Assembly (NCBI RefSeq): GCF_001447785.1
Contig: NW_015164186.1
Span: 717,781-781,780, forward strand
Direction: 5' to 3'
DNA from: Gekko japonicus
Lineage: Eukaryota
Length of the DNA: 64,000 bases
How positions within the stretch are numbered: the first letter of the stretch is position 1; every line of letters begins with the position of its first letter. A program made the translations under genes and the position numbers. Below the pieces are notes generated by a model. That model saw nothing but the letters and a program-made list of their open reading frames with translations, did not search any database and was not told the DNA's origin. This document shows, in pieces, positions 14,955 to 57,814 of the stretch.

Positions 14955-15249
14955 AATATCCTGTAATCTGTCTTTGGTACCTGATCCTCCCTCTCCCCAG
15001 TAATGTGCTATCATCTCCTTGCACCTGACTTAACAGTAATGTGCTATCATCTCCTTGCACCTTTCAACGAAAGATGACAACTGTCTCTTGTTATACGTCT
15101 ACATGCTTCCCAGCCAGTCTTCAGAGGAAACTGCCCAGCACTTGCAGGAACCAACAAGCCAAGAAAGAGTAAAGGTCCACTGAGCGACGTTAGCCTCCTG
15201 CTTCCCCACCAGGTCCATCCTATCCAGTAACAAGATAGTGTTGCATTAC

Positions 15250-15369
15250 CTGTGAACCTCAGGAATTGTATCTTCATTTTCTTCAAACACCTCCATAGAA
15301 CGGAGTGAACTGGAGAGCAGTAGCTTTTCTCCTAGGCTTCTTTCAAGTGCCTCATCCTGAATTTGTTCC
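15250..15369 (-). CDS. FAM178B: FAM178B-like coding exon, phase 2-2
   Basis: Acceptor cctttcctttag| and donor cag|gtaatg. Translates EQIQDEALERSLGEKLLLSSSLRSMEVFEENEDTIPEVHR, resembling recalled human EQALEQERERLLL...EEEVPLTPEHR. Confidence 0.9.
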
Positions 15370-16403: not shown

Positions 16404-16465
16404 CTTTTCTCCTCTAGGAGCTTGTCTAGGCTGCTGAGGTAACAATCTGGCCCTGAAGACAGGAA
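16404..16465 (-). CDS. FAM178B: FAM178B-like coding exon, phase 0-2
   Basis: Acceptor ttccctcttcatccag| and donor aag|gtaagg. Translates FLSSGPDCYLSSLDKLLEEKR, matching the recalled FAM178B/SLF2 motif Y(F)NNLDYLLQEKR. Confidence 0.9.
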
Positions 16466-17161
16466 CTGGATGAAGAGGGAAGAACAAAAGGTGTCATTTC
16501 TGCCACGTGATGCAGAACCCCGCCTGCTCACCTTGGGACCCACTGAGCCTAACACAGCTCACCAACCACGCGTGGCAGCTTTCCACAGCTCAGGACAGCC
16601 CTCTCCCACCGTTTCTGACCTCAGCCTGCCTGCGACCTTCCTATTGCGCCATTTGTTTATGATTCAACCGGGCTCCTTCAGCAAAGGGGGGGAAAGCCCA
16701 GAAGGCAAAGTCAAGAAGGTGCAGCCTTATTTAATAGCAAATTCCCAATTCCAGACACCCTTCATAGATCTTCATCAGGCGGATTTGTTCAACAGTTAGG
16801 CCGTTGAACACAATCATGTCTGGAGACACAGTTCCTCTGTATATATTCCACTGGGAAGAGATGTAACTGTTGAGTGAATCCCTCGATGAAGATCAGTGAA
16901 ATGCATCAGGAATTTGGAATTTACTGCCAAGTTAACTCTGTGTCCTCATGGTTTCAGGGCCCTTTCTTGGTTGCTTTCTCAGCAGAGCATCCCCAGTGAG
17001 TTTTGCTGCCCTGAAGGCATGTGAAATCCTAATTATGCCTCCCTCTAGCACTTTGCTAATATGGCTCAAAGGGTATATATACCTTGGGTGAGCTAAACAA
17101 AAGGAAAATGGGCCAAGCGTGGTAAGGACATAGTAGCTAAGCCAAGTCTTTGCAATTATAC

Positions 17162-18653
17162 CAGACGCACCATGTCATGAAGCTGGTATCCCTTGTGAAA
17201 CATGGTACTCACTGTGCTTCGCTCCGCAGAGCTCTGATTCATGTCATCTGTCTGAAGCAGGTCTGCGAGTGATATGAGGCCACTGTCATCCATGTCTTCC
17301 TCCATGTCTGAGCCTGGGGCCATCTCCTCTGGCTCCCCTGAAAGCTTATTGGAAGATGTGGAGCTGCTGCTCCTAGAGGAGACTGTGGGTGATGCCATCA
17401 TCAGTGGATGAGTAGAGAGTTCTGAAGGTGGAGATTCTGGATCCATGTCTCTTTCCATATCTGAATCAAGCGTCATCTTCACTGGGTCACCCACAAACTC
17501 ACCAGAGAAGGCAGAGATACTGCTTCTGGAGGAAATCTTGGATGATGCCAACAGCGGATGCGTGGGGAATTGTGAAGGTGGAGATTCTAGACTCGGGTCT
17601 CTTTCGACATCTGAATCGAGCAACTGCTTCTCGGGGTCCCCCGCAAACCCATCAGAGGATGCAGAGATGCAGCTTCTGGGGGAAATCCTGGATGTTACCA
17701 TGGATGGATGGTAACAGTATGGTGAAGGTGGATGTTCTAGTTCCACCTCTCCCATCATGTCTAACTCAAGATCCAGCTTATCTGGGTCCTTTGCAAAATT
17801 GGGGGAGGACATATAGATGCTGTTTCTGGAGGAGGCCCTGGATGCTGTGGTTGATGAATGGATGGGAGATGGTAAAGGAGAACGTCCTGTGCCAAAGGCT
17901 GTCCAGTTTTTTGCTTGGGCTTGACCCACAAGCAAGGCTCCTTCTAGCTCTTCGTTTGCCAACTGGCAGAAACTAGGCTCAAGATGTTCCAGACCTGCCA
18001 CATCCTTCTTTTCAGTTTCCCCAAGGGCTACATTGTTTGTATCTGTAGCTGCTGCCTGGTTGAGGATTCCCAGGGGACTCTGAGTTGAGGAGGTTGCCTT
18101 AGGTGTAAATTCCATAACCTGTGATCCAAAAGCTTCTTCAGTAATATCTGGCATCTCCCCTGAGCTTCGAGATTCAGAGGCAGGCCCTGGAGCAGGGCTC
18201 AAAGGCGGGGGGTCATCATAGTAGAGGAATTCAACCCGTGGCGGGGTCCAGTCTGCAGGGAACATGTCATCATCCTCCTCCTCCAGAGGAGAGTTGGCAT
18301 TTCCGGCGGGGTCCAGTCTGCAGGGAACATGTCGTCATCCTCCTCCTCCTCCAGAGGAGAGTTGGCATTGTCCCATGCACTAGTGCCTCCATTGCTTCCA
18401 GTCGTGTCCGTCACAACTGCCGATGATGCTGGCGAAAATAAGTGAGAGTGAGCAGGAGGGTCCAATGTCAGGCCCTGCTCTGGGCAGCCACGAGCTCCCT
18501 GTTTCTGCTTCTTCCTGGGTCTACTCCTGGTCCTCCCGTTCTGTCTCTGTTTGGCAGCTCCTGAGCTGAAGACAAATCTCTTGGACAGAGAGCAGGCTGG
18601 TGAGCTGCATTTCTGCCGTCTTGAGCACCTCTGCTGAGAGGAGCCTCGAGGTT
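17162..18653 (-). CDS. FAM178B: FAM178B-like large exon, phase 1-0, interrupted by a frameshifting duplication
   Basis: Acceptor ctttctgatccccag| at 18653. The frame is open through RPRKKQKQ...EEEEDDDMFPADWTPP, then shifts frame to FPADWTPPRVEFLY (recalled human FPTDWSPPPVEFLN). Donor ctg|gtataa at 17162 is in phase with the next exon. Confidence 0.8.
17290..17880 (-). repeat. Coding tandem repeat, ~4 units of 150 bp (50 aa), Ser/Asp/Glu-rich
   Basis: gaaggtgga recurs at 17424, 17574 and 17724. Peptide units S.RSSIS..S..F.GDP.K..LDSD.E.D...ESPPS. Confidence 0.88.
18240..18369. repeat. Tandem duplication (62 bp + 3 bp spacer + 65 bp)
   Basis: 18240-18301 and 18305-18369 differ by one GAG codon and one substitution. 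Confidence 0.95.
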
Positions 18654-20599: not shown

Positions 20600-23419
20600 A
20601 GGAGTAGTAGTAGATTAGATTTATACCCCAACCTTCACTACCTGATGGAGTCTCAGAGTGTCTTACAATCTCCTTTCCCTTCCCCTCCCCACAACAGACA
20701 CCCTGTGAGGTAGGTGAGGCTGAGAGAGCTCTTTCAAGAACTGCTCTTTCAAGAACAGCTCTGACAGAATTATTATTTATGTATTATTTATTTTTCGCAT
20801 TTATTTCGCGCCCATCCCATAAACGGGCTCAGGGCGGGTTACAATGTTTTAATAAATACAATAAAATTTAAATCACATTAAAAATATAAAATTAGTAGTC
20901 ATGCTTGACGTAGGTAGAATCTGGCCCATTGATGTAACCAGGTATGGCCAGTTATCAGTAGGTGGGAGATCACAACCTCAGGGGGGCCGTGTGTGGACGC
21001 CCGCTGCCTCAGCCAAAGGCCGTCTTGCAGGCTCTGCGGAATTGCATAAGATCCCACAGGGCCCTGATCTCAATAGGGAGCATGTTCCACCAGGTGGGGG
21101 CCAGGGCAGAAAAAGCCCTGGCCCTGGTCGAGGCTAGGTGGATGTCCTTTGGGCCAGGGATCACCAGATGTTGACTCTCAGAGCATAATGCTCTCTGAGG
21201 CGTATATGGGAAGAGGCGGTCCCTTAGTATGTTGGTCCCAAGCTGCATAAGGCTTTAAAGGTAATTACCAACATCTTGAAGTGAATCCGGTATTCAACCA
21301 GCAACCAATGCAGCTGACAGAGCACATGCCGAACATGGGCCTGCACAGGCGTCGACATCAGCAGGCGCCCCGCCGCATTTTGTACCAGCTGTAATTTCCG
21401 GATCAGCTTCAAGGGTAAGCCTGCGTAGACTGAGTTGCAGTAATCAAGCCTGGAAGTGACCATTGCATGGGTCACCGTAGCTAAGACCTGGGGGGGAGAG
21501 ATAGGGCTTCAGTGGCCTGATCTGCCTGAGATGGAAAAATGCAGATCTGGCAACTGCAGCAACCTGGGCATCCGTAGATAAGGAGGTATCCAATGTTACT
21601 CCCAGGCTCTTCACTGACTGGGCCGGCACCAGAGGTGTTCCTTCCAGTGTGGGAAGCCTGGTGCCCACCTCCAAACCCCCATGTCCCAGGTAACTTCAAT
21701 CGACTCTGCCGCAACCATCCAGCCACAGCATCCAAAGCCTCAGCCAAATTTCCAGGAATGGAAGATGGATGACCATCCATTAACAGATAAAGCTGAGTGT
21801 CATCAGCATACTGATGGCAACCCAGCCCATAACTCCGGACTAACTGGGCGAAGGGGCGCATATAGATGTTAAATAGCATTGGCGAGAGGATCGCCCCCTG
21901 CGGCACTCCACATTCTAGTGGGTACCGTGGGGAGACTCTCTCGCCCAGCGCCACCCTCTGTCCCTGACCATGGAGAAAGGAGGAAAACCATTTCAAGGCA
22001 GTCCCCTGGACTCCTACGTCGGCGAGGCAGTGGGTCATAAGATCATAATCGACTGTAACAAACGCTGCCGTTAAATCTAATAACAACAGCAGCGCTGACC
22101 CACCTCAGTCCAGATGTCTACGGAGGTCATCTGTAAGGACAAGAAGAGCCATCTCCATCCCATGGCCAAAGGAACAAGGGTGGGAGCATCATCCAGGAAA
22201 TCCTGGAGTTGTTTGGTCACTGCTCTCTCAACCACCTTACCCAGGAACGGTAAGTTCGACACTGGGCGGTTGGTCAGGACCGTTGGGTCCAATGATGGCT
22301 TTTTCAAGAGCGGGCAAACTACTGCCTCCTTTAAAGCTTCCAGAAAAGTCCCAGTAGATAGGGACAAGTTGATGATTTCTTCCAGAGGGGCCCGAATGCT
22401 CTCCATGCAAGATTTCACTAGCCACGAAGGGCAAGTAGTGGGCCTCACAGCTGCCAAGGTCCTGTCAACTTCCTCCCGGGTGAATCGATTACAGTGGTCC
22501 AATAGCAGACCAGAAGACGGACAAGGGGCTTCCATTTCCTTTACTGTCTCAATTGTGGCTGGGAGGTCCTGGCGGAGTGTCATGATCTTATTTGCAAAGT
22601 AGCTCGCAAATACCTCACAGCCAATAGCCAATTCCCTACTATTTGGTCTGCCCTGAGGCGGAGTCGTAATGGACTGAATAACTCTAAAATATTGGGCTGG
22701 GTGCGAGTTCGCAGACACAATGAAGGCTACATAGAAAAAATCCTTCTTTGCGGCCTTCACTGCCATCTCATAGGATTTCATAAGTGTCCTATAAGATGTT
22801 CTTGACACTTTGTCATGAGCACACCGCCACCTTTGTTCTAGCCCTCTTCTCTCCCGCTTCATCCTTCAAGGCTCCGTAGTATACCATGGTGCTGCTTTGG
22901 TGTGGGGGCACAGAGGGTGCCGGGGAGCAATTTTGTTGATGGCTTCGGAGAGCCAGTCATCCCAGTCCTCCACCAGCTCATCCAATGAGACACCAGGGGC
23001 ACTGGATCCCGCAGAGCCTCCTGAAGCCGACTAGGCCAATGCACATACAGCATTGGCCATTCCACTAAAGATCCCGGAGAACCTCCTTCAGAAGTTGTGT
23101 ATGCAGCTCTCCTGCATCCACCCCCTTATGTCACTTCAATCTCAGACCTGTTTACCCAGTCAAGAGACCAGACAGAGATGGGCGAGCATAAATGCGCTCA
23201 CCGCCTAAACAGGGTGGGCATGCTATGCTCAGCCGGACCTTCAGGGCAAAGTGGTCAAACCATGGGACATCTGTAGTCATCAGATCCACATGTATCCCCA
23301 TCCCAAAAATCAAATCCAGCATGTGGCCATCCAGCAGCTGCAAGTGGAGGAGTGGGGAATCAAACCTGGTTCTCCTAGACTACAGTCCACGCACTTAACC
23401 ACTACACCAAACTGGCTCT
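20600..23419 (-). mobile_element. tRNA-type SINE split in two (~20600-20770 and ~23333-23419) by an L2 insertion
   Basis: The two halves join to match the intact copy at 24408-24651. Confidence 0.75.
20771..23332 (-). mobile_element. 5'-truncated L2-clade LINE (ORF2 pseudogene)
   Basis: RT motifs GVPQGAILSP and YADDTQLY, plus LDYCNS and LHWL.V..RI.FK. AT-rich tail at ~20771. Frameshifted. Confidence 0.88.
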
Positions 23420-27934: not shown

Positions 27935-30565
27935 TTATTTATTTATTTATTTTGTATACCGGGCTCCCTGCCAGGGCAGGCTCAGGGCGGCTTACAGAAT
28001 GAATATATATATATTCCAGACACAATCTGGAACTTTATATATAAAATGAGGTATGTTAAAACACAAGCTTTAAATAAAACCACAACATGCAAAATCATAG
28101 ATACTAGCAAACATGGGTGCTAATAAGTGATGGTGGCATTCTTTCGGCATCCAGATAGTTAACTACTACCATAGTCTGGGTTCTTGCTAGGCTATTTAGT
28201 TATTAAGTTGGTACTGATACTGGGGCCAGGGCCACAGTATTGGGAGGCGGCACCCTAATCGAAAGCCTGGTGGAAGAGCTCCGTTTTACAGGCCCTGCGA
28301 AACTGTAAAAGGTCCCGCAGGGCCCTGGTGTCGTCCGGGAGCTCATTCCACCAGTACGGGGCCACCACAGAATAGGCCCTGGCCCTTGTCACAGCTAGCC
28401 TGGCTTCTTTAGGACCTGGAAGGGCCAGATGGTTTTGGGACCCCGATCTTAGTGCTCTCTGGGGAACATATAAGGAAAGATGCTCCCTTAGGTAAGTAGG
28501 TCCCTGACCATATAGGGCTTTAAAGGTAAGAACCAGCACCTTGAACCGAATCCGGTATGCTATAGGCAGCCAGTGCAGTGCTTTTAGGGCAGGCTGGATG
28601 TGCTCCCACATAGGGAGACACAATAACAGCCTCGCCACTGCATTCTGCACCAGCTGCAGCTTCCGGACATGGGACAAGGGCAGCCCCATGTAGAGAACAT
28701 TACAGTAATCCAATCTCGAGGTGACCATTGTGTGGATCACTGTTGCCAGGTCATTGCGTTCAAGGAAGGGAACTAACTGCTTAATCAGCCGCAGATGATA
28801 AAAGGCAGACTTTGCAGTGGCTGCTACCTGGGCCTCCATTGTTAACGAGGCACCCAAGAGCACTCCCAAGCTTCTAACCTCTGGCACTGGCACCAATGCT
28901 GCCCCATCGAAGGTCAGGAGTAGAATCCCTAACCTTGGCCCGCTCCGACTTAGGCACAGTACCTCCGTCTTTGTCGGATTCAATTTCAGTCGACTCAGTC
29001 TAAGCCAACCAGCCAGGTCCAGATCTTCCGAACTAGTCCGACTGGCCGTCCAACGACAGATAGAGCTGGGTGTCATCTGCATATTGGTGACAACNNNNNN
29101 NNNNNNNNNNNNNNNNNNNNNNNNNNNNNNNNNNNNNNNNNNNNNNNNNNNNNNNNNNNNNNNNNNNNNNNNNNNNNNNNNNNNNNNNNNNNNNNNNNNN
29201 NNNNNNNNNNNNNNNNNNNNNNNNNNNNNNNNNNNNNNNNNNNNNNNNNNNNNNNNNNNNNNNNNNNNNNNNNNNNNNNNNNNNNNNNNNNNNNNNNNNN
29301 NNNNNNNNNNNNNNNNNNNNNNNNNNNNNNNNNNNNNNNNNNNNNNNNNNNNNNNNNNNNNNNNNNNNNNNNNNNNNNNNNNNNNNNNNNNNNNNNNNNN
29401 NNNNNNNNNNNNNNNNNNNNNNNNNNNNNNNNNNNNNNNNNNNNNNNNNNNNNNNNNNNNNNNNNNNNNNNNNNNNNNNNNNNNNNNNNNNNNNNNNNNN
29501 NNNNNNNNNNNNNNNNNNNNNNNNNNNNNNNNNNNNNNNNNNNNNNNNNNNNNNNNNNNNNNNNNNNNNNNNNNNNNNNNNNNNNNNNNNNNNNNNNNNN
29601 NNNNNNNNNNNNNNNNNNNNNNNNNNNNNNNNNNNNNNNNNNNNNNNNNNNNNNNNNNNNNNNNNNNNNNNNNNNNNNNNNNNNNNNNNNNNNNGAAATA
29701 GCTCGCAAAAGTCTCACAGCCAATCTCCAATTCCTTATCATTTGATCTTCCCTGTGGCAGAGTAGTAATAGATTGAATTGTTCTAAATAATTGGGCTGGG
29801 CGAGAGCTCGCAGACGCAATCATGGCTGCGTAATATTCTCTTTTCGCAGCCTTGACTGCCATCTCATAGGATCTCATAAACGTCCTATAGGATGCTCTTG
29901 TTGCTTCGTCCTGAGCCCATCGCCAATGTCTCTCTAGCCATCTAAGCTCCCACTTCATCAACCTCAGCTCCTCTGCGTACCATGGAGCGAGTTTAGAGCG
30001 GGGGCGCAGAGGGCGTCGGGGAGCAATCTCATCAATAGCTACCGAGAGTTGGCTTTGCCAGTCCTCATCAAGCTCATCCAATAAGCCGCCAGGGTGCATC
30101 GGATCCCACAGAGCCATTTGGAACTGCATAGGGTCTGTTTGGCTTCGCGAGCAAGTTAAAATACGCTCGCCACCCAAACAAGGTTGGGGTGGCACATTCA
30201 TGCGGGCCTTCAGGGCATGGCGGTCCAACCATGGAACTGCCATAGCAGTAATTCGGTCCACTGTGGCCCCCACCACGAAGATCAGATCAAGTGTGTGCAG
30301 ATCAAGTGTGGGAGCCATAACATATTGGGAGAGTCCTAGCGCCACTATGGACAACACCAGGTTCATTGCCTGTGTGGAGGTCGTGTCATCGGCATGGACA
30401 TTGAAGTCACCCAGGACTAACAGTCTAGGGTGCTCCAGTTCCCAGCCTGATACAGCCTCCAGCAGGGATGGCAGGCTATTTGCCAGTGCGTTGGGTGGAC
30501 AGTACACCAGCCAAACAGCCAAACTCTCCCCGACTTCCCACACAAAGCCAGCACACTCTATGCCC
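27935..30565 (-). mobile_element. L2-clade LINE, ORF2 from endonuclease to C-terminus (spans the assembly gap)
   Basis: VYCPP, LGDFNVH, LDYCN and LHWLPIAYRIRFK motifs. (TTTA)n tail at ~27935. Confidence 0.9.
29095..29694. other. Assembly gap (600 N)
   Basis: Run of N. Confidence 1.
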
Positions 30566-31326
30566 ATGAGCTTCAGCTCAGTAGTCTAACCTAGAGTAGT
30601 CTAACCAGTAGTCTAACCTGGAGGTCACCATTGCATGGATTACTGTGGCTAGGTCAGGGCGAGACAGGAAGGGGACCAGTCGCCTGATCTGCCACAGCTG
30701 AAGAAATGCCAGTCTTGCAGTGTTTGTGATCTAGGCCTCCATTGATAAGGAGGCGTCCAGAAGCACACCCAGGCTCTTGGTGGTCAGTACCGGTGTTAGA
30801 GATACACTGTTGAGAGCTGAGAGTTGGCACCTCAACCTTGAAACCCCTCCACCCAGCCACAGAACTGCCATCTTTGATAGATTGTCTCAGCCAGTTCTGT
30901 TTCAACCATCCAACCATGGCCTCCAGCCCATAAAATAGTTGGGGCAGCATCCGTCTGTCCATCCACCAACATATATACCTGGGTTTCATTTACATACTGA
31001 TGGCAACCCAGCCCCAAACTCTGCATCAGCTGGGTGAGGGGACACATATAGTTGTTAAACAACATTGGAGAGAGGATTGCCCCCTGGGGGACCTCACACA
31101 CCAAGAGGTGTCAGGATGACACCCTCTCTCCTAGCGCCACCCTCTGTCCCCAACCATGTAGCCATTGTGCTGGTTTGCTATGCAAAGTGCTAGCTTAGAG
31201 CCACAATGCCTACCCAGAAAAAGTGGAGCCTCTCTTGACACCTGCAGTCTATTGTGGCTATTAGAGACAATTGCGAGATTCTTCCACTGCCTGGTTAAAA
31301 TGGTTCCAGAAAAGACAGTTCTTTAG

Positions 31327-31789: not shown

Positions 31790-34700
31790 TTTCTCCTTCT
31801 GTTTGTGAGGGTCTTTGTTATGGAATACACAGGTTAGAGAGGGGGCTCTAGCATGTGTACATTTCACCCACTCATTATGCAATTCATCAAAATCCTTCCA
31901 TTTGATTAAATAGTACAGTTCGTTCTGTCTCAACTTAGAATCAAGGATCTCTTCTACTTCATGGTGGGGTTCACCATCTATCATCAGAGGAGGTGGGGCA
32001 GCTGGACGAGGGCCCCACTTGTTTGGGCCCAGATCCTTTTTTAGCAGACTGAAATGAAATACAGGGCGAATATGCCTCAGAGTCTTGGGTAACTCAAGTT
32101 CTACAGCCACTTCGTTCAAGACTTTCAACACTTTGAAAGGGCCAATATACTTCCACCCCAATTTCCTGCCCCGGCTGGATCCCCTTCAAATTTTTTTGTT
32201 GAGAAGTACACTGAGTCCCCAGGCTGTAAGTCCCATTCAAGAGCCCTCCCTTTATCAGCTTGTTTTTTGTAGTCTTCTTTTGCCTTTCTCAGAGTCTCTT
32301 GGATTGTGGACCATCGATCCTTTATGTCCCACCACCATTATTTCAAATCTCCCGGTTTGGGCTCCTGAGTAGTCACCGTGCGGAGAAGGCCCTTCGTATC
32401 TCTGCACAGCCTTAAAAGGTGAGAGGCCAGTAGAATGTATACTGAGTTATTATAACTGTATTCCGCGTAAGGGAGGAGGTTGACTGAGTTGTCCTGTTGG
32501 TAATTGTGAAGCACCAGAGGAATTGTTCTACCACTTGATTCAGCCTCTCAGTTTGCCCATCCGTCTCTGGGTGACAGGAGCTGCTGAGACCTTGCTCAAC
32601 CCCCAACAGCTGTAGCAGCTCCTTCCAAAATTTAGCGAGAACTGCGATCCCCTGTCCGAAATGATCTTGTGAGGAATGGAATGCAGCCTCACGATGTGCT
32701 GCATGAACAGCTTAGCTAGTGACCTGGCCGAGGGCAATTGTGTACAAGGAATAAAGTGTGCCTGCTTGGAGAATGTGTCGACCACCACTCAAATAACTGT
32801 TTTACCTTTTCTGGGTGGTGTCCTGGGTCAGAGCAGACTCAGCCAAGATCAAGGGGACGAGACAGAATCACTAACCAGAAGCATAAGTCAAGAGTTCAGT
32901 CCAAGAGTCATACACAAGGGAAGCCAGCCGAGGGTCCAAGAAACAAAGTTCAAGCAGGTCCAGGGTCAAAGCCAAAGGTTCATAAATAGCAGCCAGAAAC
33001 AGGTCCGGGTGGTGTGGTTGCACGTTTCCAGGGAGATAACAAGTTGCTCCCACACCTTCTTCCTCTGAAACCCCATCCTTTATCAGCAGCTCACAGCTGG
33101 GTCTCATTGCTTACAAGAGGGCTGTCCATTAACTCCAGGTGTTCCTCTTGATCTGGCAGTTGCCAAGCAGCAAGGCATGCGCTCCGCCTCCTCTTGAGGA
33201 GCTCCAAGTGCACCCACCTCCTCCTGCGTTCCCTGGCTCTCTGGGGACAGAGGAGGCGAGGCAGCCTGTGAAGTTTCCCCATGATCTTGGGTTGTTTCTT
33301 CCGTGTTCCCAGTGTTCATGGGGCTGGAGTGCCTGCTCTCTTCATCAACTGGAGCACTAGGACCTGCATGTGCTGTCTCAGGGTTGTTAGAAGCATCAGT
33401 TGGCTGAGTCTCAGGGCTGCTGACAGGGCTGTTATCAGAATCAGCTGAGTGCTCTTCAGTTAAAGCAGACTGGCCCACGACAGGTGGTAAGTCCATTGAA
33501 ATCCCTCTGGCTTTTCAAAGGGTTGTAATGTCTCAGGAGGCTTTCCTGGCCTTCGCTTCCCATTAGGCAGGTCTGACAGGAACCCACGTATTGCGATATC
33601 TGCCCTCATAAGCAGCCACCAAAATTGCCTTTGAAGGAGGTGCAAAGTTTTCAGGTATCCAAAATGCCCTGCCAGTTTATTTTCGTCCACCAAAGTCAGA
33701 ATTTCCCCTCTCAATGCTTTAGGCATGAACAGCCTCCCACCTCTGTACCAACAGCCATCCCCTTTCTGCTCTGCTGAATTGTCAGTTTGAATGTCCTCCG
33801 TGTCCCCCTCTGAAAAAGCTGTTTTAAATGTACAAATCCAGAGTTCAACATCAATGAGGGCCTCCGCTTTCACCCGGCTGCAAGTTACCACTCCCCCCCC
33901 CAACTGAGTGGGTGTGAACATAAGAGTCTATGACTTCTTCCCGCTGGCTGTCATGTTGCAAGAGGCGGGATAGTGTGTCAGCCAGAGACTTTGACTTCCC
34001 AGGGAGGTGCTAGAGGGTGAACTGAAATTTAGAGAAAAACTCTGCCCAGCAGAGCTGCTTGGCGTCCAGGCACCTGGGCGTGCATAATGCCTCCAAATTT
34101 TTGTGGTCTGTCCACACTTCAAATGGCACCCTCACCCCCTCCAGCCAGTGCCTCCAGGTAGTAAGGGCAAGTTTGATGGCAGCCACCTCCTTGTCCCAAA
34201 CAGCCCAATTACACTCCGTGGGGGAGAACTTTTTAGACACATATGCCAGGGGGTGGAGTTTCCCATCCTCTCCTTGCTGCAGGATCACCCCTCCCATAGC
34301 CCCATTGGAAGCATCCACTTAGATTACAGAAGGCTTGTTTTCATCAGGAAGATGTAAAATGGGCTCAGAGGTGAACAACCCCTTGAGTTTTTAAAATGCC
34401 TGCTGGCACTCGGGGGGTCCAGTCCAGTTAGGTATTTGGCTTATTACTGTCAGGACCCTTCCCCTTCATTTTTAACAAGTCAGTAAGAGGCAAGGCCACA
34501 TGGGTGAAGTTTGGGATGAATGTGCGGTAGAAATTGGTGAACCCAATAAATGATTGGAGTTGGCGCCAGGTTTGAGGAGCCTCCCACCCCACCACGTCCA
34601 CACCCAGTTCCTTCCCTGAAATTCGATATCCCAGGAAATCCAGTTCATCCTTATGAAACTCACACTTGGAGAGCTTGACAAAGAGCCAATGCTTGTAAAG

Positions 34701-35850
34701 GGTTTGGAGCACCTCTCGAACCAACTTTACATGCGAGTCTTTATCTTTTGAACAGAGCAAGATATCATCTAAGTACACTAGCACCCCCTTGAATAAATGT
34801 TTGTGGAACACTTCATTGATTAGATTCATAGAAACCCCAGGAGCTCCCGCTAACCCAAATGACATCTTCAGGTATTCAAACTGTCCCAACGGGGTATTGA
34901 AAGCCATTTTGTGTTCATCCCCCTCCCGAACGCGCACTCTGTAGTAAGCATCACGCAAGTCAAGTTTGGTGAAAATGCGCCCCTGGGAAGCTTCCACCAG
35001 GAGGTCTTTGATGAGCAGGAGAGGGTAAGCATTGGACACAGACACTGCGTTTAAGCCCTGGTAGACTGTACACAGCCGCAGCCCACTGTCCTTCTTTTGG
35101 AAGAGGATGGGGGCAGCAAAGGGGGCTGGGCTCATTGCGTACAACTTGCCTTTGGGCATTTTACACCCTGGCAAAATTTCTACAGCACAGTCTGACTTTT
35201 TGGGGGGAGGCTTGTCTGCCTCCTCCTCTTCAAACATTCTAGCCAAGTATTGCCAAGTATTGCCAGAACCTATAATTTTCACCCAGATGGATGGGTCCCC
35301 AATGAAGGAGATGTGCAAGCCTTCAACAACTCTAGCCAAGTCTTTGTGCTCAAGAGGGATGAGATTGAGCTCTACCTGCGCCAAGCAAACATGTTCCGGA
35401 ATGGGAGTTGGCACCCCCCCACACACGCTTGGGATTCCACCCATGAGGTTTGCATCAGGGTCTGGGAAGTGCAGGGCCCCACCACTCCACTGAACATATG
35501 GGTCATGATATCAGAGCCAGGGGTTGCCTAGCACCATCAAGAATTTTGCAGCTGGGGTAATAATGAATGGGCGTTGCTCCCAATGGGACCCCGTTTCCAT
35601 TACCACATGCACAGTTTGATACTTGCATACCTCCTTCATTTGGAGACCCATCCATCTGGGTGAAAATTATAGGTCCTGGCAATACTTGGACCAGTACCCC
35701 GAGCCCGGTGACTAATGCTGGGCTGATTAATTCTCGGGCACACCCAGAGTCAATCAGAGCTCTCACTTGTATCTGGGTGCCCTGCACGGGGTTTATTACA
35801 GTCACCGTCACATAGAACAAAGGGGGAGAGGTTCTCACTGAACATGGCAC
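31790..35850 (-). pseudogene. Gypsy pol remnant (PR-RT-RH-IN-chromodomain)
   Basis: ORF fragments 35503-35850 (PR), 34428-35444 (RT), 34010-34318 (RH), 33460-33921 and 32412-32788 (IN), and 31727-32161 (GPF plus chromodomain HEVEEILDSK...YYLIKWKDF...NEWV). Confidence 0.93.
32819..33482 (-). mobile_element. Solo LTR of a second LTR family inserted in the integrase
   Basis: TG...CA ends with imperfect inverted termini (tgtcctgggtcag / ctggcccacgaca) and TSD ggtgg (32814-32818, 33483-33487). Removing it restores DLPP-RKGKTVI.VVVDTFSK. Strand is inferred from the ORF remnant. Confidence 0.92.
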
Positions 35851-41136: not shown

Positions 41137-41486
41137 GGAGCTGCTGTGGCTCAAGTGGTTAAGACACTGAACTGCAGGCTGTGGAAGGTGGGTAGTTCAG
41201 CAGTTCGAGACCCGAGTTCCCGCATGACGGAGTGAGCTCCCGTCTCTAGTTCCAGCTCCTGCCAACCTAGCAGTTCGAAAGCAAGAAATTGCAAGTAGAT
41301 AAATAGGTACCACTTCGGTGGGAAGGTAACAGCGTTCCGTGCTCCTTGGTGTTTAGTCATGCCGGCCACATGACCACGGAAACGTCTTCGGACAGCGCTG
41401 GCTCTTCGGCTTTGAAACGGAGATGAGCACCGCAACCCTAGAGTCGGATTCGACTGGCTTTCGAGCAAGGGAACCTTTACCTTTAC
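41137..41486 (+). mobile_element. Sauria SINE
   Basis: Same family. (ACCTTT)n tail and short TSD ctata(gga). Confidence 0.92.
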
Positions 41487-43522
41487 CTATAGGAAAGACA
41501 CTCCGGGCATTCTTAAAGGTCTCTTTCATAACTCAGCCTTAGCGTTCGAACCTAATTGGGAGGGGGGCTAAGTGCTGGTGAAATCTTGGCACTGATAGAG
41601 CAATTCATTCCAGAGACTTATTTCAGAAGGGTAATCATGTTAGATTGTCTGTAGCAAAACCAAAAGGGAACCTTATAACACTTTAGATATTAACAGATTT
41701 ATTGTAGTTTAAGCATCCGTGTAGTTAAGCATCAGATGCATGAACTGACTTCTCAGTCAGCAGACATAGATGTACACATGGAAAACAATCATGAACATTG
41801 GTGTTAAAACAAAATGCAAGTGGCATGATTTGTGACATTTCTATGCAAAACTCAGAAGTACAACATAAGCACAGAGATGACTCACAACAGCCATAACTGT
41901 TTAAATCCTGGTTAATACAATTGAATCTACTTTTAAATCCTAATAAGCCATTATTTATTCATCAATTATCTATTACCTATGCTACAACTTATTTCGTAGG
42001 GAAGGAGCACCGTTACAGCAGCCATTAAAATGCAATCTGCCATGACATTCCAATTTCTTGTAATAAATTCCTCAGTTGTATATATTCTTTTTTTTTTTTT
42101 TTAAAGCACAGATGCAAGGGAAACAGAAGACCTGGTCAGGATCAGGCACAATACCTTACAGTCGTGTGCCTTTTGATCTGCTAGGCTCCGCCCTTCAACC
42201 TAAGCAGACAAAAGGCCAATCTGGTTCTTGCTTTCCAGGGCTGTTTTAACTTCTGCTTCACACCAAAGCATCAGTCCATCACCTCCAACTGTCCTACTGT
42301 TGCATACAGTTGCTGGTTCTCAGCCAGGACAGTAGCAGTCTGCTCTTGGGGACTCAGAGGTCACACAGCTTGGGATTTCATCCATCATCTCCCAGAAGGA
42401 AGGCTGCGTCAGAGGAGGAGATTGGCAGGATCTTAATCATCTATCAGGTTGAGCCTGCATTGGGATATCCAACAACTGCCTCTCAAGCGGCCGATGTGGG
42501 GTGAAGGACAGTAGAAGACAAGTGCCACGGCATGCCAAATAAACAGCAGGAGACACGGTGGCTGTATAAATGAAATGTATTCTAAAAACTAAGTCCACAC
42601 AAGCTTGGGATGCAAGAAGGTGGGCGAGAGAGAAAGAGCCCGACACGGACGTCAGCTCAAACGGGCAAGGGGAGGGACAGCGAAGGAAACATAAGAGGTG
42701 AAATGCAATGGGCACATGCCACCTTGGCAGACACAGTGGGAAGGGTGACAACAAACACCTAAAATGGGCAGGGGATGGGGGGGGGCAGACAGCCCATGTC
42801 CCATGTGCAGCGAGCACCCCTAGTAAGAGATGTGCAGGACCTTCCTACCACAGCTAAGTGTCGCAGAGGACCTGGTCACAGGGGGTCATGCTCTTGAGGT
42901 GGCTGCTGCTTCCGGAGATGGACCTGGTGGCCAGTCAGCTCACTGTGCACCTCCTGCAGGTCAAGGCCGAGGAGTGGGAGGGTGCACTGCGTGTTGTGAG
43001 CCAGGCTCATGGGCTATAAGGTCTGACGTCCAGCTCTGGGGAGGAGAAAGTGTTAGATCACCAAATGAAACGACATGCGACACAGTCCACCCAAGGTGGG
43101 GTGCCAGAAAAATGCAGTAGGGCCAGCCAAGGGGCACATCCCAACCCACCAGAAGCACTGGTGGAAAGCAGTACCACTGGGCCTCGGCTAGCTAGATTAG
43201 AAGAGAGAAAGGGGCATTCCCCCCCCCCCGGTTACAACCATTGGCGGGCTACGATGTTACCATATTGAACAGAGGCACAATCTAAATATGACTGCTTAAC
43301 TGCACAGTTGTACAAGCAAACAGGGAACTATAGAGTCTCAACATGTGGACAAGGCATGTTGGTGCTTTGTAGCAACATGTGCCACGGAACCGCTACTGGG
43401 CACTCAGCCTTTGCCAGCAGTGACACTGGCAGGAAGGCTTTGGTGAAGGCACAATTGCCGGCTAGCAGCCTGCCCATCCATGAAAGGAGACACCCACAGC
43501 TATCAGCCTATCCCCCACTCAC

Positions 43523-44887
43523 TCAAATTGGCCAGGTGCAAATGGGACGAACTATGTCTCCAGTGGCGCTGGATGCCTCCTCTTCTCGGCTTGGCTTCCT
43601 TGGCGTGGGCTGGGGGAGAAGCTGCAGGTGGCTGGTCGGCTGATGGAGAACTAAATGGCTGTTCCATGGCCAGGCTGGCCCCATCAGATTCTGCTCCATC
43701 CTCTCCAGTGTGAGCTGACGATGAGAGCTCTTCAGAGTCAGTGACGGTCTTCTCAGACCCTGCCTGGTGATCAGAGAGTCTGGGTTCGTCCCGGTCCTGA
43801 GGCACGGTCTCATCCTGAACTTGCGCCAGACCAATGCGACGGAGGAGTACACGGGGTTGCATGGGGATTAGGTTTTCAGCCCCTGACTGGGAACCCGGGT
43901 GTCTGGGTTCATCCCTGTCCTCAGATGCGGTTTCACCCTGATCCAGACAGACGCGACGGAGGAGTACACGAGGTTGCTTGGGGTTTAGCTCTTCAGCGCA
44001 AGACCGGTTCTCTCGGTGTCTGGGTTCATCCCCGTCCTTGGGGGCCGTCCTGCACTGATCCAGGCAGACACGGCGGAGGACTACACGGGGTTGCATGGGG
44101 GTTACTTCCTCGGTGCACAACTGGTGATCACAGGGCCTGGGTTCGTCCCAATCCCCGAGTGCTGTTCTGCACCGATCTTGCACCAGAGAGAGGCGATGGA
44201 GGAGCACCCGGGGTTGCATGGGCATGAGCATCTCAGTTTGCGACTGGTCCTCAGGGGGTCTGGGCTCACCCCAGCCCCGAGATGCTATCTCACGCCAGTC
44301 TTGTGCCAGACAGATGCGGCGGAGGAGTACACAGGGTTGCATGGGGGTGGGTTCCTCAGTACATAACTGGTGAGCATGGGGTCTGGGTTCATCCCAGTCC
44401 TGAGGTGCGGTCTCACACCCATCCTGTGCCAGACAGATGCGATGGAGGTGTACACGGGGCTGCATGCTGGAGGGCCCTGGCGTTACCCTCTCTGTGAAGA
44501 CACTGTTCACCTGACTGGCACCCACTCCGGGGATCTTTGCCTTTGCAATGCTGCTATTCTCACTGCCGCGGACGTCGCTGGCACGCAAAGCTGCGGAGCG
44601 ATGGCGCTTGCAGCGATGGGAAGACTGCAGGTGATGTTGTGGGCCTGGGGGTATGGGCGCCATCTCGTTCCAAGAGCAGCAATCCCAGTACTTTTGATGG
44701 ATGCGGTGGAGGACCACACAAGGCAGTCCAGGGCAGTTCCCCCCACTGGCACTCCCTGCAGGGTTCTGTGCCGTGGCAATATGTCTGTCCTCACAATCAC
44801 AAGTGTCAGTGGTAGGCAATATTGTCAGACATTGGTGGTGAGGCTGGAGGTGATGTGGTGGTCTTGCAGGCACAGATGCTGCTGGAG
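43523..44887 (-). CDS. FAM178B: Large symmetric (phase 1-1, 1365 nt) exon, probably FAM178B N-terminal extension, with PxVxL tandem repeats
   Basis: Stop-free for 455 codons. Branch point ctaac plus gtcccttttcccatgcag| acceptor, and ttga|gtgagt donor. Phase matches the 18653 acceptor. No TE domain motifs. Confidence 0.65.
43765..44465 (-). repeat. Coding tandem repeat, ~6 units of 123/117 bp (41/39 aa)
   Basis: Unit starts (M/K)QPxVxL at 44465, 44342, 44219, 44096, 43979 and 43862 (periods 123, 123, 123, 117, 117). Confidence 0.92.
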
Positions 44888-47800
44888 CTGCATGGGAAAA
44901 GGGACGTTAGCAGTATTGATAACGGGGCTGCTTATTATGGGTTTTCATCCCAGCTGTGGGCCAACATCCAAATCTGCCATACCTTACAAGCATTTGTAAC
45001 AAACGGCCTGCCATCGGGAGCAGATGCCACGGCTGGTCCCTGCAGGATGTGTGTCCATTATTCCACACAGGCTTTGCGTTCTACTCCGGCAGACATGTGG
45101 GCACAAAAACAGCAAGTAGCTGTTCCTGGTCCTGCCTGCAAGTGGAACTTCAGGAGGGGAATTTCTTAGAGGCTCTGACCCATGCCGATTAAGCCGACTG
45201 CATTTCTGTTTGTGAGGGCCAGACATACACAGAGAGAGTGGCCATGTGTGATGCCACACTGAAAGCGTGACCGCATAATAGCAAAAATATCAAACACTGG
45301 CATTGTTGCCATTTAGATGACTGGAGAATGGAGGCACACATGACTTCCCTTCCAGTATTTCGTGGAAATATGACATTTGCTACCATTCCAATGGGATCCT
45401 TTGCTGGAGATGCAGTGTGCCACCCTGCCCGTTCTCAGGGCAAAGGATGTGGGACATCCATGGCTGGCTTCCTCTCGTAGCCTTCCTTCTCAGTGGGCTG
45501 TTTGCCACAACAGTGGCTGGCCACGGCTGCTTCCACAGGGTTTTGTTTTTCCTTGCATGGAAAGCAGAAAGCCCCTGGATTAAAGGGGGAAATCTATAAA
45601 ACCATGCTCATTCCTAGCACGATGTGGCATTCTCAGGAATTTCCCCTTTACGACATTTCTAGAAACAAACCTGCTTTTCTCCAGTTTGAAGGGGAATCTT
45701 CTGAGTGGCCAAAGGGGAGAGCCCACATTGGATGCCCCCTCTGTCTCCGCTACTGGGGGGGGGGGATTAATTTCTGCTTTCCCAATGGGACAAGGCAACC
45801 TAAAGTGAGGGAAAGGGGTGTGTGGATGCTGTGCCCACTTTTGCTGTCTGCTGCTGTCATGGCAGGGGCACATTTTCGTGCCTCATGGGGAAGTAGCCCA
45901 TGTCTGCCTGTGTGCTTAGAGAGACAGTTCCTTTAATGCCCTGTGAGGCTGCACATCAGGCCTGTAGCCAGGATTTTGTGGCTTGTGGGGAAAAATTTTT
46001 TCTCGTGGGGCTGAAGTTCTCAGTGCAGAAAGAAAAGCCATGTAGCCAACAGAAAGCTGTTACCAGGATAGATCTCTAAATTGCAAGCTGTCAACCACTT
46101 CAGATGACAGTTCTCAGTTGCTGCAAGTTAATAATTTCTGGCAGCCTAAGCAACAATTCTGATACAAGCTGGTAGACAGGGGTGATGACTTCTATAGTCA
46201 AGAAAGCTAACACTTAGGCAGAAAAACTCTCTTAAAGGAGATCAGTTTCTTGAAACAGAATTAGAAGGGATCCTAGGGGTCACCTACTCTAACCCCCTTG
46301 ATCAGTGCAGAAATTAGTCAACTACAGCACCCCACTCTGTTAAAGGAGTGCACACCTTTTAAAAAGTCTTTTAAAATGACTGAAAAAAGCATTTACAGGA
46401 GAAATTCTTGTGGGGCTGTGCCTTTAAGAAAGAAGGTGGAGCCCCCAGCTACGGGCCTGCCACACATGCTTCTCCAGCTAAAAGGCTGTTTATGTGCAGC
46501 AGGTGCCTTGTTTTTCTGCTTTCTTCAGTGTTTGGACAATCAGAGGACCTGACCCCTAACCGTGAGGAACTGCTGCCCATCTAACCACTGAGCTATAGTA
46601 CTGACTGACCATTGCAACTAGAATTGCAGCTCTTCCTTCCCTGCATGGCCTTGGCATGGCCTTTCCTCAGCAAAAGAGTACTTGACGGCATGCTGCTGCC
46701 GTTTGGGCAGCCAAGGGATTTTACAAAGCCCTCCCTGATAGGAGATGTATTGCTTACTGATGCTGCCCTCTGACCTGTGGTGCTAGCTGTGCTGGCAGAG
46801 GTGTCCTGGGCTCTTCCTGGAAGTGTGTGTGGAACAGATTGTCATCAGTGTTCCTGTCATCGTAACACACTGATTGGTGCTGTCTGTGCACAATCAGTAT
46901 GGCAGTACTGATGAAAGCAGCGATGTTGTGACTGGTGGCCAGCAAAGGAGTTGCTACAGGTTCACCCTTTGTTGCTGCTTTGGTTGTTGTTACCAACTCT
47001 ATTGCTATGCCTTGGCGTTGCTGCTCAGAGAGCATACAATTCCACCTAGCTGCCAAGGCACAGAGCTGTTTTAGCTGGACCATCGGATTACCCTACCAGA
47101 CATCATGTAGACAGGCTTCCTTCTGTGCGATCAAAGTCATGGGGAATGGTTTAGATTATTACCTGCTCTGCGGGCCGATGAGCTTTTGCAGCTTTTCACT
47201 CTGCCAGTTCCTGAGAGCTTGCCATGCTGTGAAGATAAAAGTCAAAGGTTAGAGGCCTAGCTTGGAAGACAGTTCAATAAGCATCTCTGCTTCCCCAGTC
47301 TAGGGCCCCTTGAGGATTGCCTGCTCCAGCCGTGTGTGAGCAGGTCAGTTCTCTGTGGCTGGGACAGATGCAGCATTAGACTCAGATGTTAAGGACTGAT
47401 TCTAGACTGTCAGGCCTCAGTACATGCTCTGTATCTGACCTAACAGTTCTGGGCAACATTTTTTCTGCTTGTCACAACTTTGGGCAAGGGATCCCAGGTT
47501 GTTTACTTTGGAGAACCTCCCAAAACTAATACTGAGAAATATTCAAAGTAAAAAAGCAGCTAAAAACAGCTTGAGTCAGGTAGAGATGCCAAACTCATTT
47601 TATTGTGATATTGTCCTAGAAACTGGAGATTATTGTAATCTGGTATTGTAAAGCATTAGCATTGAGGTGTGCTAGTATTTATTGAGATTTCTATTATTGG
47701 GGCTAGATCTCTTGCTTGAGCAACCAGTGGAGAATTTATCTTGTGGATTTTTTTTTGTTGTTGTTTGGGGGGGGATAATCTGTTGGGTTGAGAGAAACCA

Positions 47801-53570: not shown

Positions 53571-53883
53571 AGATGTTCTAAAGGCTGATTCCATGGGGCA
53601 GGGGAGCACAGGTGAACGCTGCCATTTTAAAGGGATTGCTTAGCTCCAGCCCAACTCCCTAGATAGGCTGTGGGCTGAGAGTCTGCTCAGGGGCTCTCCT
53701 GCAACTGCTCTGCTGGTTTCCTTAAAGCCACAGCAAGGGACAGGGGGGCTCCAGCTTACCCAGCTAGAAAAAGAAGGAAGAGCCCCAGGAGCCACAGTTG
53801 TCCTGCAGAAGCTTAGTAGTAGTAGTAGTTTTTAAAAAGCAGTTGTGGAGGAAAGGTGGAGCAAAAACACTGTGGGAATGGTA

Positions 53884-54229
53884 AAGGTAAAGGTTCCCTT
53901 GCTCGAAAGCCAGTCGAATCCGACTCTAGGGTTGCGGTGCTCATCTCCGTTTCAAAGCCGAAGAGCCAGCGCTGTCCGAAGACGTTTCCGTGGTCATGTG
54001 GCCAGCATGACTAAACACCAAGGCGCACGGAACGCTGTTACCTTCCCACTGAAGCGGTACCTATTTATCTACTTGCAATTTCTTGCTTTCGAACTGCTAG
54101 GTTGGCAGGAGCTGGAACTAGAGACGGGAGCTCACTCTGTCATGCGGCACCCGGGTCTCGAACTGCTGAACTACCGACCTTCCACAGTCTGCAGTTAAGC
54201 GTCTTAACCACTTGAGCCACCGTAGCTCC
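53884..54229 (-). mobile_element. Sauria SINE
   Basis: Reverse complement of the same family. TSD tgggaatggta (53873-53883, 54231-54241). Confidence 0.92.
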
Positions 54230-54497
54230 ATGGGAATGGTACCATGTGGAAAATAATTGGAAAGTGTTTATTCTTTTATTGTAGTTAATAGACTTGTTAA
54301 GAGCTTGTTGGCCTGCTCTTGTTGATTTTATATTAAATATAGGCATTATCAAAGTTCCCATCCACAGTGTCTCTTCCACCTGTTGAAAGACTGCAAACAC
54401 GGAACTCTGACACAAGCATAAGGTCTTCACAGAAAGAGGCTTCTCTCTGCATCCACAAGGACCTATAGTTTGATCTGCTTTTAATGCCAATATGCTT

Positions 54498-54731
54498 AAA
54501 GGTAAAGGTTTCCCTTGCTCGAAAGCTAGTTGAATCCAACTCTAGGGGGCGGTACTCATCTCCGTTTCCAAGCCGAAGAGCCAGCGCTGTCCGAAGACAT
54601 TTCTGTGGTCATGTGGCCGGTATGACTAAACGCCGAGGTGCACAGAACACTGTTACCTTCCCACCAAAGCGGTACCTATTTATCGACTTGCAATTTCTTG
54701 CTTTCAAACTGCTAGGTTGGCAGGAGCTGGA
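54498..54731 (-). mobile_element. 5'-truncated, more diverged Sauria SINE
   Basis: aaaggtaaagg tail and body similarity. Lacks the tRNA head. Confidence 0.85.
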
Positions 54732-56894
54732 CTCTGCAAAAGCTATCCTGTGATGGACGTAGAGTCTTTTTTTACTGACTGCAGGGCCAAGAGCTGTTGA
54801 GAACTACCCTCTCAGACAGAATGCCACAGAAGGGATACAGCAGCCTGACCACCTGCCCCGACTGCCTGCCCCCCGCCCCCAGCCAGAAGCTTATTTCTTC
54901 CACAGAAGCAAGAGAAAGGAAACTCTGGCCCTTGGCACTAGCCAGAGCAACAAGGACTGCTGGGAAGTTCCACCAGCACCATCCCAGTTGGAACATCAGC
55001 GGGGGGGGGGGGGGGGGGGGGGACAGCCACAGAAAAATTTAAACTACATAAATTTATCCTAGATTGAGAAACAAAAAGATGGTCCCATTTTTGCCTGGCT
55101 AGTTATTTAATATTTTGTTACTGTTTTAAAAAGCAATGCTCTATTTTTCCTACAGAAGTTTAAAAAGTATGAGGATCTGTCCACATAGATTAAAAAAAAC
55201 AACCCCTTTAACAATAATTATATGAAAGTCTTCCAGGCAGGCCCATAGCCAGAAAATTGGGGGAGGGGGATGAGTACAGTGGTGGTGAGCATATCATTAT
55301 TTATTTACTTTGTTATGACTGAGCTACGATGTAGTACAAAATCTCTAAAGGGGTCATTCTACAAAGAAGTTTAAACGATAATCCATTTTGTTTGAAACCA
55401 AATATTCCCTTCATTTATTTACACATGATGAACAGAGGCTTGTAAATGCATGAAGATCCCCACCCCCATATTGGCCCACTTCCACTTTCCTGGGTTGCAA
55501 CGTGCCAAATGGGAATCCCCTCCACCAATGTATCAGCATAAAAATGTCTGTTTCTTCCTCTGAGCATGAAATGAAGCTTGCTAACAGACATCACAGAAGA
55601 AGGTGCGTTTTCTTGGATTGATGGCCCCTTTGATTCACAACACCATTTTCCATTGAACTCCACCCCCACTTCCTGCAAAAGCCCAAAACCCTCCTCTGGT
55701 TTGGCTCTACATAACTGGCTATAGGAAGACTTAAGAATAGCTATATGCAATTCTGGAATGCAATATGGTTGCCAACCTCCAGGTCAGGCCTGAAGATCTC
55801 CCAGAATTACAAGTGATCACCAGACTACAGAGATCACTTCTCCTGGAGAAAATGACTACTTCAGATAACAGACTCTATGGTATTATACCTGATTAATGTC
55901 CCTCCGCCACCTTCCCCAGGCTTCATCCCGCAAATCTCCAGGAATTTCCCAACATGGATTTGGAACCCTAGTGAGTAAGTGCACATGTTTCTTTCGCAGC
56001 TACAGCTTGCCAAGCATACAGGGGAAGGGTGGCTTTTTTGCTAGGGAAAAACAGGGGGGGGGGGGGGGGGGATGGAGGTGACAGCAGAGAACTAGCTTTG
56101 TCCTAAAGGGATTTCTATGCCTTTACATAACATACCAAGTCAGAGCCTTGGCTCACCGAAATGAATATCACCTGCATTAGCAGGGAGTGGTTGTCAAGCA
56201 GAGAAAGGCCCAGATACTTGGGCTCAGAAGTTGCCATAAACTGATGAGTCACATCTTTGGTCTAGCTAGCTTAATATTTCCTCCTCTGGCTGGCAGCGGC
56301 TCTCTGAGGTATCAGGCAAAGGGTCAAACGCCTTTCCTGACATCAGCTTATCTGAAGTCCTTCCATGGGAAATAAGAGGGGCTGAACCTGGGACCGTCTG
56401 CATACAAAGCAGGTGTTCTACCACAGAGCCACAGCTCTGTGCTCTCTCAGAAATTCCTCTACTGCAACTGGAAAGGCAACCTAGAAAGAGTCTAAATAAA
56501 TAAAGTCAGTGGCCCCTGGGGCTGCAGACACAAAGGAGAAGACACTCCGGCTCCCATCACCAGTGAGAGGCACAAGGACTCCTGGAAATTTGTGCCACCT
56601 CTGTCCCAGCTAAAATTCTCCTCTGCCTCCATTCTGACGGTGATCTCCCTCTTTCACCTCTTTCCTCCAGTCACCTTTCCTCGGTTCCCTTGTAAGTCTA
56701 GCTTTTTACACTTTATAACTGAGGACGGGGCTGATATTTTTTCTACACAACAAACAGTTAATGTAGATTGTCTTGAAATAATAATAATTTGCTTATTTAT
56801 CAGCATATCTCTGAAGTTTGGTGACCCAATTTCAGGATCAGGATGGGCTGCATCCTTCAGTTGTTCTCACAATGAGGCGGATATAAAATTTCAG

Positions 56895-57418: not shown

Positions 57419-57814
57419 CTGTTTGTACAAAGTCTTCTGAGAGCAATCACTAAGTGTCACTGATAAGTTAGGGAAAGGCAACACAGAGAAAGGACGGCCA
57501 ACCTTCAGCCTCTTAGTCTTTCGCAGCTGCTGGTACTCTTGCAGGCTAGTCTGGAACCTAAAGCTGAACAGACCTGCTTTGGGTCTCCTTAAAGAAGACA
57601 AAGGGATCTGGAACCAGCGGATGTCCCTCCAGGTGCTAAACAGCTCCGTGCTGTATGATACCTTCTTTGGCTTGGGAACTAAACTGACACTGCCGTTTTC
57701 ATTGCAAGACAGATTCTGGCCTGCCGGCTCCACAGCATCCCTGGATGTCCCAGGTTGTTCACAGGGTGGAGCAGATCCCTCAGAATTTTGCTTTCCTGTC
57801 TCCTTCATGGGCAT
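57419..57814 (-). CDS. FAM178B: Candidate first coding exon (ATG 57814, phase-0 donor)
   Basis: ATG follows an in-frame upstream TGA. 132 open codons (MPMKETGKQNSEG...WFQIPLSSLRRPK...RKTKRLKV...LYKQ) end at a strong cag|gtgagt donor. Acceptors at 57861 and ~58047 lie upstream. Assignment to this gene is by position and strand only. Confidence 0.55.

Follow-up and report, generated by a model that had tools for sequence, protein, structure and literature searches.

A gecko-specific exon of the FAM178B locus encodes a tandem PxVxL array and a candidate multivalent HP1 ligand

The targeting module of SUV420H2 (KMT5C) contains three HP1-binding motifs, whose multivalency locks HP1 on H3K9me3 chromatin (PMC11163940; PMC11723951). 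For peptides that associate with HP1a in Drosophila, Colmenares et al. (2025; PMC12526061) derived a 14-position consensus, the HP1a Access Code (HAC). Numbered from the central valine as position 0, a basic residue occupies +4 in 16 of their 16 heterochromatin-enriched peptides, motifs with proline at −2 are usually free of basic residues at −3 and −4, and in mammals PxVxL motifs often have basic residues at −1 and +4. The same study notes, citing STAM2a as an example, that a canonical PxVxL is not always enough for binding. FAM178B and its paralogue SLF2 (FAM178A) are NSE6-like proteins with a CANIN domain (PF14816; SIMC1-SLF2, PMC9708086). Essentially no functional work on FAM178B was found among the papers that a literature search listed, and none of those listed for SMC5, PxVxL and heterochromatin together dealt with FAM178B or SLF2 in its title or abstract. 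A search for the KAP1-type core PRVSL also returned nothing.

We analysed a stretch of 64,000 nt from Gekko japonicus (contig NW_015164186.1, positions 717,781 to 781,780), referred to here as the window. The exons of FAM178B run along its minus strand, with the exon that is the subject of this report between the second and the third of them:

57419-57814, minus strand: FAM178B coding exon 1 (by tblastn), with its ATG at 57814, donor GTGAGT after 57419, phase 0
47163-47226, minus strand: FAM178B coding exon 2 (by tblastn), 64 nt, left in phase 1; acceptor CAG, donor GTAATA
43523-44887, minus strand: gecko-specific exon of 1365 nt, phase 1-1, open throughout and predicted to be disordered
43503-43522, minus strand: donor and tail, with GTGAGT at 43522-43517, in-frame tail SEWGIG and stop codon at 43505-43503
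17213-18653, minus strand: FAM178B exon 3, acceptor at 18655-18654, joined to exon 2 in canonical models
near 16388-16471 and 15210-15371, minus strand: small FAM178B exons that precede the CANIN exon
9088-9261, minus strand: FAM178B CANIN exon, encoding CANIN profile positions 65-119

A preliminary description of this DNA had assigned the locus to FAM178B, and the assignment stands: exons 1-3 are the first coding exons of named squamate FAM178B proteins, and positions 9091-9258 (minus strand) match profile positions 65-119 of Pfam CANIN (PF14816; E=9.4e-10). The FAM178B-named proteins of Paroedura picta, Rhineura, Hemicordylus and Sceloporus pass, by tblastn, from exons 1-2 directly to the exon at 18653. 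Hence, the acceptor proposed at that position is a genuine FAM178B exon 3 acceptor, used in Paroedura and other squamate proteins. An open reading frame at 17159-18334 (minus strand) matches CANIN (PF14816) proteins of Gekko kuhli, Sphaerodactylus and the skink Lerista, and the Lerista protein opens with the same exons 1 and 2 as the gecko models of about 600 aa described below. In Paroedura FAM178B, Pfam places CANIN at residues 596-960. As judged from these alignments, the repeat exon sits in intron 2 of the SLF2 paralogue FAM178B, with CANIN exons downstream in the window.

Several other features of the window are recorded here in their own right. Exon 1 (57419-57814, minus strand) encodes a strongly conserved segment, W-R-D-I-R-W-F-Q-I-P-L-S-S-L-R-R-P-K-A-G-L-F-S-F ... 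Q-Q-L-R-K-T-K-R-L-K-V-G-R-P-F-S, that belongs to no Pfam family, is common to all squamate FAM178B proteins seen and to the short array product, and may be an unrecognised interaction motif. Exon 3 contains three tandem 150-nt (50-aa) serine-rich units (17399-17848, minus strand; 64-78% identity) of the form ESPPSx(L/F)PTHPL...SSRSSISASS...D(S/T)D.ERD, which are present in other squamate FAM178B proteins too. Between the repeat exon and exon 3, the intron (19000-43000) is dense with retroelement remains, including reverse-transcriptase ORFs at 21484-22104 and 34431-35510 and an endonuclease/RT-like ORF at 29695-30585, all on the minus strand; an assembly gap at 29095-29694 consists of 600 N. 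A dispersed repeat is present in at least four copies in both orientations, at 14669-15007 and 41154-41486 on the minus strand and 53836-54195 and 54469-54750 on the plus strand. Its translation reads L-L-E-S-Q-S-N-P-T-L-G-L-R-C-S-S-P-F-Q-S-R-R-A-S-A-V-R-R-R-F-R-G-H-V-A-G-M-T-K, and it is probably a SINE-like element.

The preliminary description of a symmetric, stop-free exon of 1365 nt is borne out by the splice signals and the open frame, both read on the minus strand. The acceptor AG lies at 44889-44888 and is preceded by a pyrimidine tract, and the stop-free frame, which extends from 44906 to 43506, spans the whole repeat exon. Since exon 1 contributes 396 nt and exon 2 another 64 nt, both boundaries of the repeat exon are in phase 1. 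A word-based protein search with the exon returned four matches, all from geckos: KAL8174013 of Gekko kuhli (K2H54_036557; 601 aa, 86% identity to the exon), 'uncharacterized protein LOC132580764' of Heteronotia binoei (600 aa, 71% identity) and two ORFs from Logan contigs. Of 1.84 billion cluster representatives scanned with HMMER, two gave real matches, both gecko; we rejected a third, an insect repeat protein aligned over 36 residues only, as spurious. Thus, no relatives outside geckos were found among the 1.84 billion representatives, and the lineage restriction that had been suggested for the array was recovered in both searches. As annotated, FAM178B of Paroedura and of the non-gecko squamates is without the array exon. 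Across the five available gecko sequences, which are 62-86% identical, the frame is open over 455 codons.

The exon encodes no recognisable domain. A Pfam search of it returned no family, and an ESM Atlas feature search with the array gave a top score of 0.77, which is the noise level. AlphaFold2, run on the whole exon with an alignment of only five sequences, produced a model with a mean pLDDT of 26 and no stable secondary structure. A folded repeat domain, which we considered, is absent from this model. From the same five-sequence alignment, only short strand propensity was predicted, at two motif cores. These predictions fit a disordered region that bears short linear motifs.

Within the exon, the translation resolves into an array and a single outlying copy of its motif:

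43740-44465, minus strand: six-unit tandem array, units (M/K)QP(R/C)VxL(H/R)R(I/V/L)(C/S/G)LxQ ... D-E-P-R
44465-44343, 44342-44220 and 44219-44097, minus strand: units 1-3, of 41, 41 and 41 aa
44096-43980, 43979-43863 and 43862-43740, minus strand: units 4-6, of 39, 39 and 41 aa
44700-44723, minus strand: degenerate upstream motif copy, LPCVVLHRI

The cores of units 1-6 are PRVHL, PCVLL, PRVLL, PRVVL, PRVLL and PRVLL, followed by HRI, RRI, HRL, RRV, RRV and RRI, respectively. The six units of 39-41 aa, their cores, the (H/R)R(I/L/V) suffix and the upstream PCVVL are therefore exactly as had been described. The two 39-aa units (4 and 5) are shorter than the 41-aa units by exactly two codons, and the upstream copy LPCVVLHRI is deleted in Heteronotia. 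In Tandem Repeats Finder the repeat periods are 117 and 123 nt, with 2-3 copies per row, 71-78% matches and scores of 263-334. We found no second copy of the exon in the window with blastn or tblastn, and rejected an origin from a dispersed repeat or transposon. Shuffles of the exon that preserve its composition contain on average 0.2 PxVxL matches (maximum 3), compared with seven in the real exon. However, the seven matches are descendants of one duplicated unit; hence, it is their retention, and not their count, that makes a meaningful test.

We aligned 29 units from five gecko sequences, that is, the window and four orthologues. Q(-3), P(-2) and L(+2) are each present in 29 of 29 units, V(0), R(+4) and L(+7) each in 28, and position +3 is always H or R. 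Position +5 is hydrophobic in all 29 units, while Q(+9) is found in 26 and the distal E and distal R in 27 each. The PxVxL pattern itself is matched in 28 of the 29 array units. When only orthologous units are compared, pairwise identity reaches 98% in the P, V and L columns and 17 of their 18 unit-columns are invariant, as against 61% identity and 51 invariant columns of 164 in the spacers (Fisher p=1.7e-7). The x positions, at 62% identity, are indistinguishable from the spacers (p=0.76). Thus, the motif positions are better conserved than the spacers among gecko orthologues, and the alternation of conserved P, V and L with variable x reads, at the level of sequence, as the signature of a strand-type docking motif. 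The preliminary description had singled out P, V and L as invariant. This holds relative to the spacers, but they are not the sole conserved positions, since Q(-3), R(+4), L(+7), Q(+9) and the distal E-P-R are near-invariant as well.

Among the six units of the window, dS ranges from 0.5 to 0.85, from which it follows that the array is old. The species have unit-specific features in common, among them the gap of two codons in units 4 and 5, and this places the origin of the six-unit array before the split between Gekko and Heteronotia. All nine indels among the five gecko orthologues involve whole codons, as do the gaps in the 39-aa units, in keeping with what had been noted from the window. 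The dN/dS ratio among the window units is 0.44 for whole units, with 0.31 for the core and 0.46 outside it; values of 0.3-0.46 represent moderate constraint only. Those parts of the exon that lie outside the repeats are conserved at 72% and 77%, compared with 68% for the array. One basic segment, P-R-R-(G/K)-G-I-Q-R-H-W-R-H-S-S-S (43524-43640, minus strand), is near-invariant in the five geckos and conserved better than the array.

An exon of this kind could be a non-functional exonised tandem repeat, or an artefact of annotation, whose frame and motifs are accidents of recent duplication. The absence of a Pfam family, of relatives beyond geckos and of a predicted fold would suit such an origin, as would the merely moderate constraint and the fact that the opposite strand of this GC-rich repeat is likewise open over long frames. 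However, accidents of recent duplication are difficult to reconcile with 455 codons that stay open in five geckos at 62-86% identity and accept only whole-codon indels, with an array whose six units were already present in the ancestor of Gekko and Heteronotia, with conservation that is specific to position, with intact splice signals, and with the lack of any other copy of the repeat in the window. We regard a non-functional origin as most improbable. That the exon is instead a real, conserved, gecko-specific coding exon at the FAM178B locus is very likely.

We propose that the array-bearing product of this locus, which is specific to geckos and lacks CANIN, is a candidate multivalent ligand of the HP1 chromoshadow domain, a reading suggested by sequence to which we assign a probability of about 0.4. 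The putative ligand of the HP1/CBX chromoshadow dimer would be the 13-residue core of each unit, QPxVxL(H/R)R(I/V)(C/S)LxQ. The cleft of the chromoshadow dimer would take up P(-2), V(0) and L(+2), and the partners of R(+4) and H/R(+3) would be acidic residues in the chromoshadow domain and its tail. An array protein of this type could act as a multivalent HP1 client that holds several HP1 dimers simultaneously, and might accumulate at heterochromatin, make HP1 more stable at such sites, or act as a competitor of other PxVxL partners. The conserved N-terminal segment of FAM178B would be part of this protein as well. All seven motifs of the window match the 14-position HAC consensus, which is that of Drosophila HP1a rather than of vertebrate CBX proteins (PMC12526061). 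By comparison, shuffles contain on average 0.22 matches to this consensus, and each of five FAM178B orthologues, all about 1000 aa long, contains 0-1. The gecko core QP(R)VxL(H/R)R also fits the trends reported in the same study: a basic +4, Pro(-2) without basic residues at −3/−4, and basic −1 and +4.

The core might instead dock a partner other than HP1, or be part of a longer composite motif; a Rev-type nuclear export signal for CRM1 and a cyclin RxL site are examples. Class-2 CRM1 nuclear export signals have the pattern Phi-x-Phi-x-x-Phi-x-Phi. By inspection, V-x-L-x-x-(I/V/L/M)-x-L, which has this spacing, is present in 27 of 29 units, although the pattern is a loose one. R-V-L-L resembles a cyclin RxL-type site, and predicted disorder suits short linear motifs of any kind. 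Moreover, the hydrophobic +5 (29/29), L+7 (28/29) and Q+9 (26/29) are not needed by the PxVxL pentamer. Judged by sequence, conservation at these positions and at the distal E-P-R exceeds what HP1 docking needs, and the partner may be different or additional. Neither an export signal nor an RxL site explains P(-2), present in 29 of 29 units, and R(+4), present in 28, whereas both are predicted by the grammar of chromoshadow ligands. Basic flanking residues are likewise typical for HP1 ligands, and it is not obvious why a protein would need export signals in a six-fold array. On balance, we consider a different or additional partner the main alternative, and somewhat less likely than the HP1 chromoshadow.

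In all available gene models, which are computational, the array exon is the last coding exon and follows FAM178B exons 1-2. The array-bearing models (Gekko kuhli and Heteronotia X1-X3) are 600-603 aa long and contain no Pfam family. Their two opening exons map by tblastn to 57814-57419 and approximately 47226-47163 in the window, and the first of these, with its 396 nt of coding sequence, is common to them and to canonical FAM178B. The models differ in how they end. In Gekko kuhli K2H54_036557 and Heteronotia X2 the donor is read through, the usual ending among the annotated gecko models, and seven codons lead to a stop (43505-43503 in the window); Heteronotia X1 terminates a few codons beyond the donor position; and Heteronotia X3 uses the donor and continues for six codons, KLDIRS*, which bear no likeness to the start of exon 3. 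The window itself encodes an intact short product, of 614 codons by length. No AATAAA was found on the minus strand within 1.5 kb past the stop at 43505-43503, the nearest being at 41959-41954, an observation that is not decisive. NCBI annotates the Heteronotia array gene, LOC132580764, as a locus separate from FAM178B. It has the first two coding exons of FAM178B, and appears from sequence to be an alternative product of that locus, one without CANIN.

This architecture differs from the one originally suggested, in which the array is a cassette exon, spliced from 43523 to 18653, that precedes CANIN in one protein and tethers an SMC5/6-type complex to HP1 heterochromatin. Such splicing is feasible on paper: the repeat exon is of phase 1-1 and both flanking FAM178B exons are of phase 1, so that its inclusion preserves the frame; the donor GTGAGT (43522-43517) is strong, and its equivalent is used in Heteronotia X3; and the acceptor at 18653 is the genuine one. 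The gene models speak against it. CANIN is absent from the polypeptide that carries the array in every available gecko model: those with the array end at or just after the exon, and the CANIN-bearing FAM178B isoforms of Paroedura, X1 (1116 aa) and X2 (1113 aa), which are three residues apart, both skip it. From the donor, Heteronotia X3 proceeds to KLDIRS* and not to anything like exon 3, and the array gene and FAM178B are kept apart as loci by NCBI. The 43523->18653 junction is found in no gene model, although a fusion of about 1500 aa lies beyond the length range of the word search, and clustering at 50% could hide one. Finally, exon 3 is itself frameshifted before CANIN in this assembly, as detailed below. 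Taken together, these observations make the fusion decidedly unlikely. We are similarly doubtful, and slightly more so, that the exon is included in frame between exons 2 and 3 in some gecko tissue, for example the germline, to place a seven-fold array on the CANIN protein. If this were true, it would provide an NSE6-like CANIN protein, and with it an SMC5/6-type complex, with a lineage-specific route to heterochromatin.

The frameshift in exon 3 results from a tandem duplication:

18240-18301 and 18305-18369, minus strand: tandem duplication in FAM178B exon 3, spacing 65/68 nt, 97-98% identity

The duplication shifts the frame into a stop near 18200, before CANIN, and has no counterpart in the sequences of Gekko kuhli and Paroedura or in the Logan-contig sequences. 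We considered removal of the duplicated copy by intra-exonic splicing and rejected it, as there is no GT/AG pair at equivalent positions. The duplication may be either a genuine allele that disables the gene or an artefact of assembly.

The CANIN-less array product has implications for annotation and, conditionally, for heterochromatin biology. The RefSeq entry 'uncharacterized LOC132580764' appears to trace to the FAM178B locus, and the array exon was born in one reptile lineage and has persisted at least from the ancestor of Gekko and Heteronotia onwards. Were the array to bind HP1, it would represent a natural chromoshadow ligand with a valency of six to seven and regular spacing, and could serve as a probe of how the valency and spacing of a client shape heterochromatin retention and condensation. 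It would also be a clear case of a new protein that arose by exon birth and tandem duplication of a short linear motif.

The known systems introduced above each share part of this arrangement. With FAM178B and SLF2 (FAM178A; PF14816; SIMC1-SLF2, PMC9708086), the gecko array shares a locus and the first two coding exons. Unlike these NSE6-like CANIN proteins, the array products are without CANIN in all available models. The likeness to HAC ligands (PMC12526061) lies in the motif and its setting. Hydrophobic residues alternate at P(-2), V(0) and L(+2); residues at −1, +3 and the near-invariant +4 are basic; the core is free of acidic and aromatic residues; and the motifs lie in predicted disorder, with their positions conserved among orthologues. 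In contrast to HAC ligands, whose consensus is defined for Drosophila HP1a, the gecko protein contains six to seven near-identical copies in strict tandem at a spacing of 39-41 aa, and has additional conserved positions at +5, +7 and +9 and in the acidic E-P-R. SUV420H2 (PMC11163940) offers the parallel for multivalency, because in both proteins several motifs, putative HP1-binding ones in the gecko, are gathered in one disordered segment. The three sites of SUV420H2 are dissimilar and belong to a catalytic SET-domain protein, whereas the gecko array consists of six duplicated units in a product with no recognisable domain. By analogy, the gecko array could lock HP1 in the way that the SUV420H2 module does.
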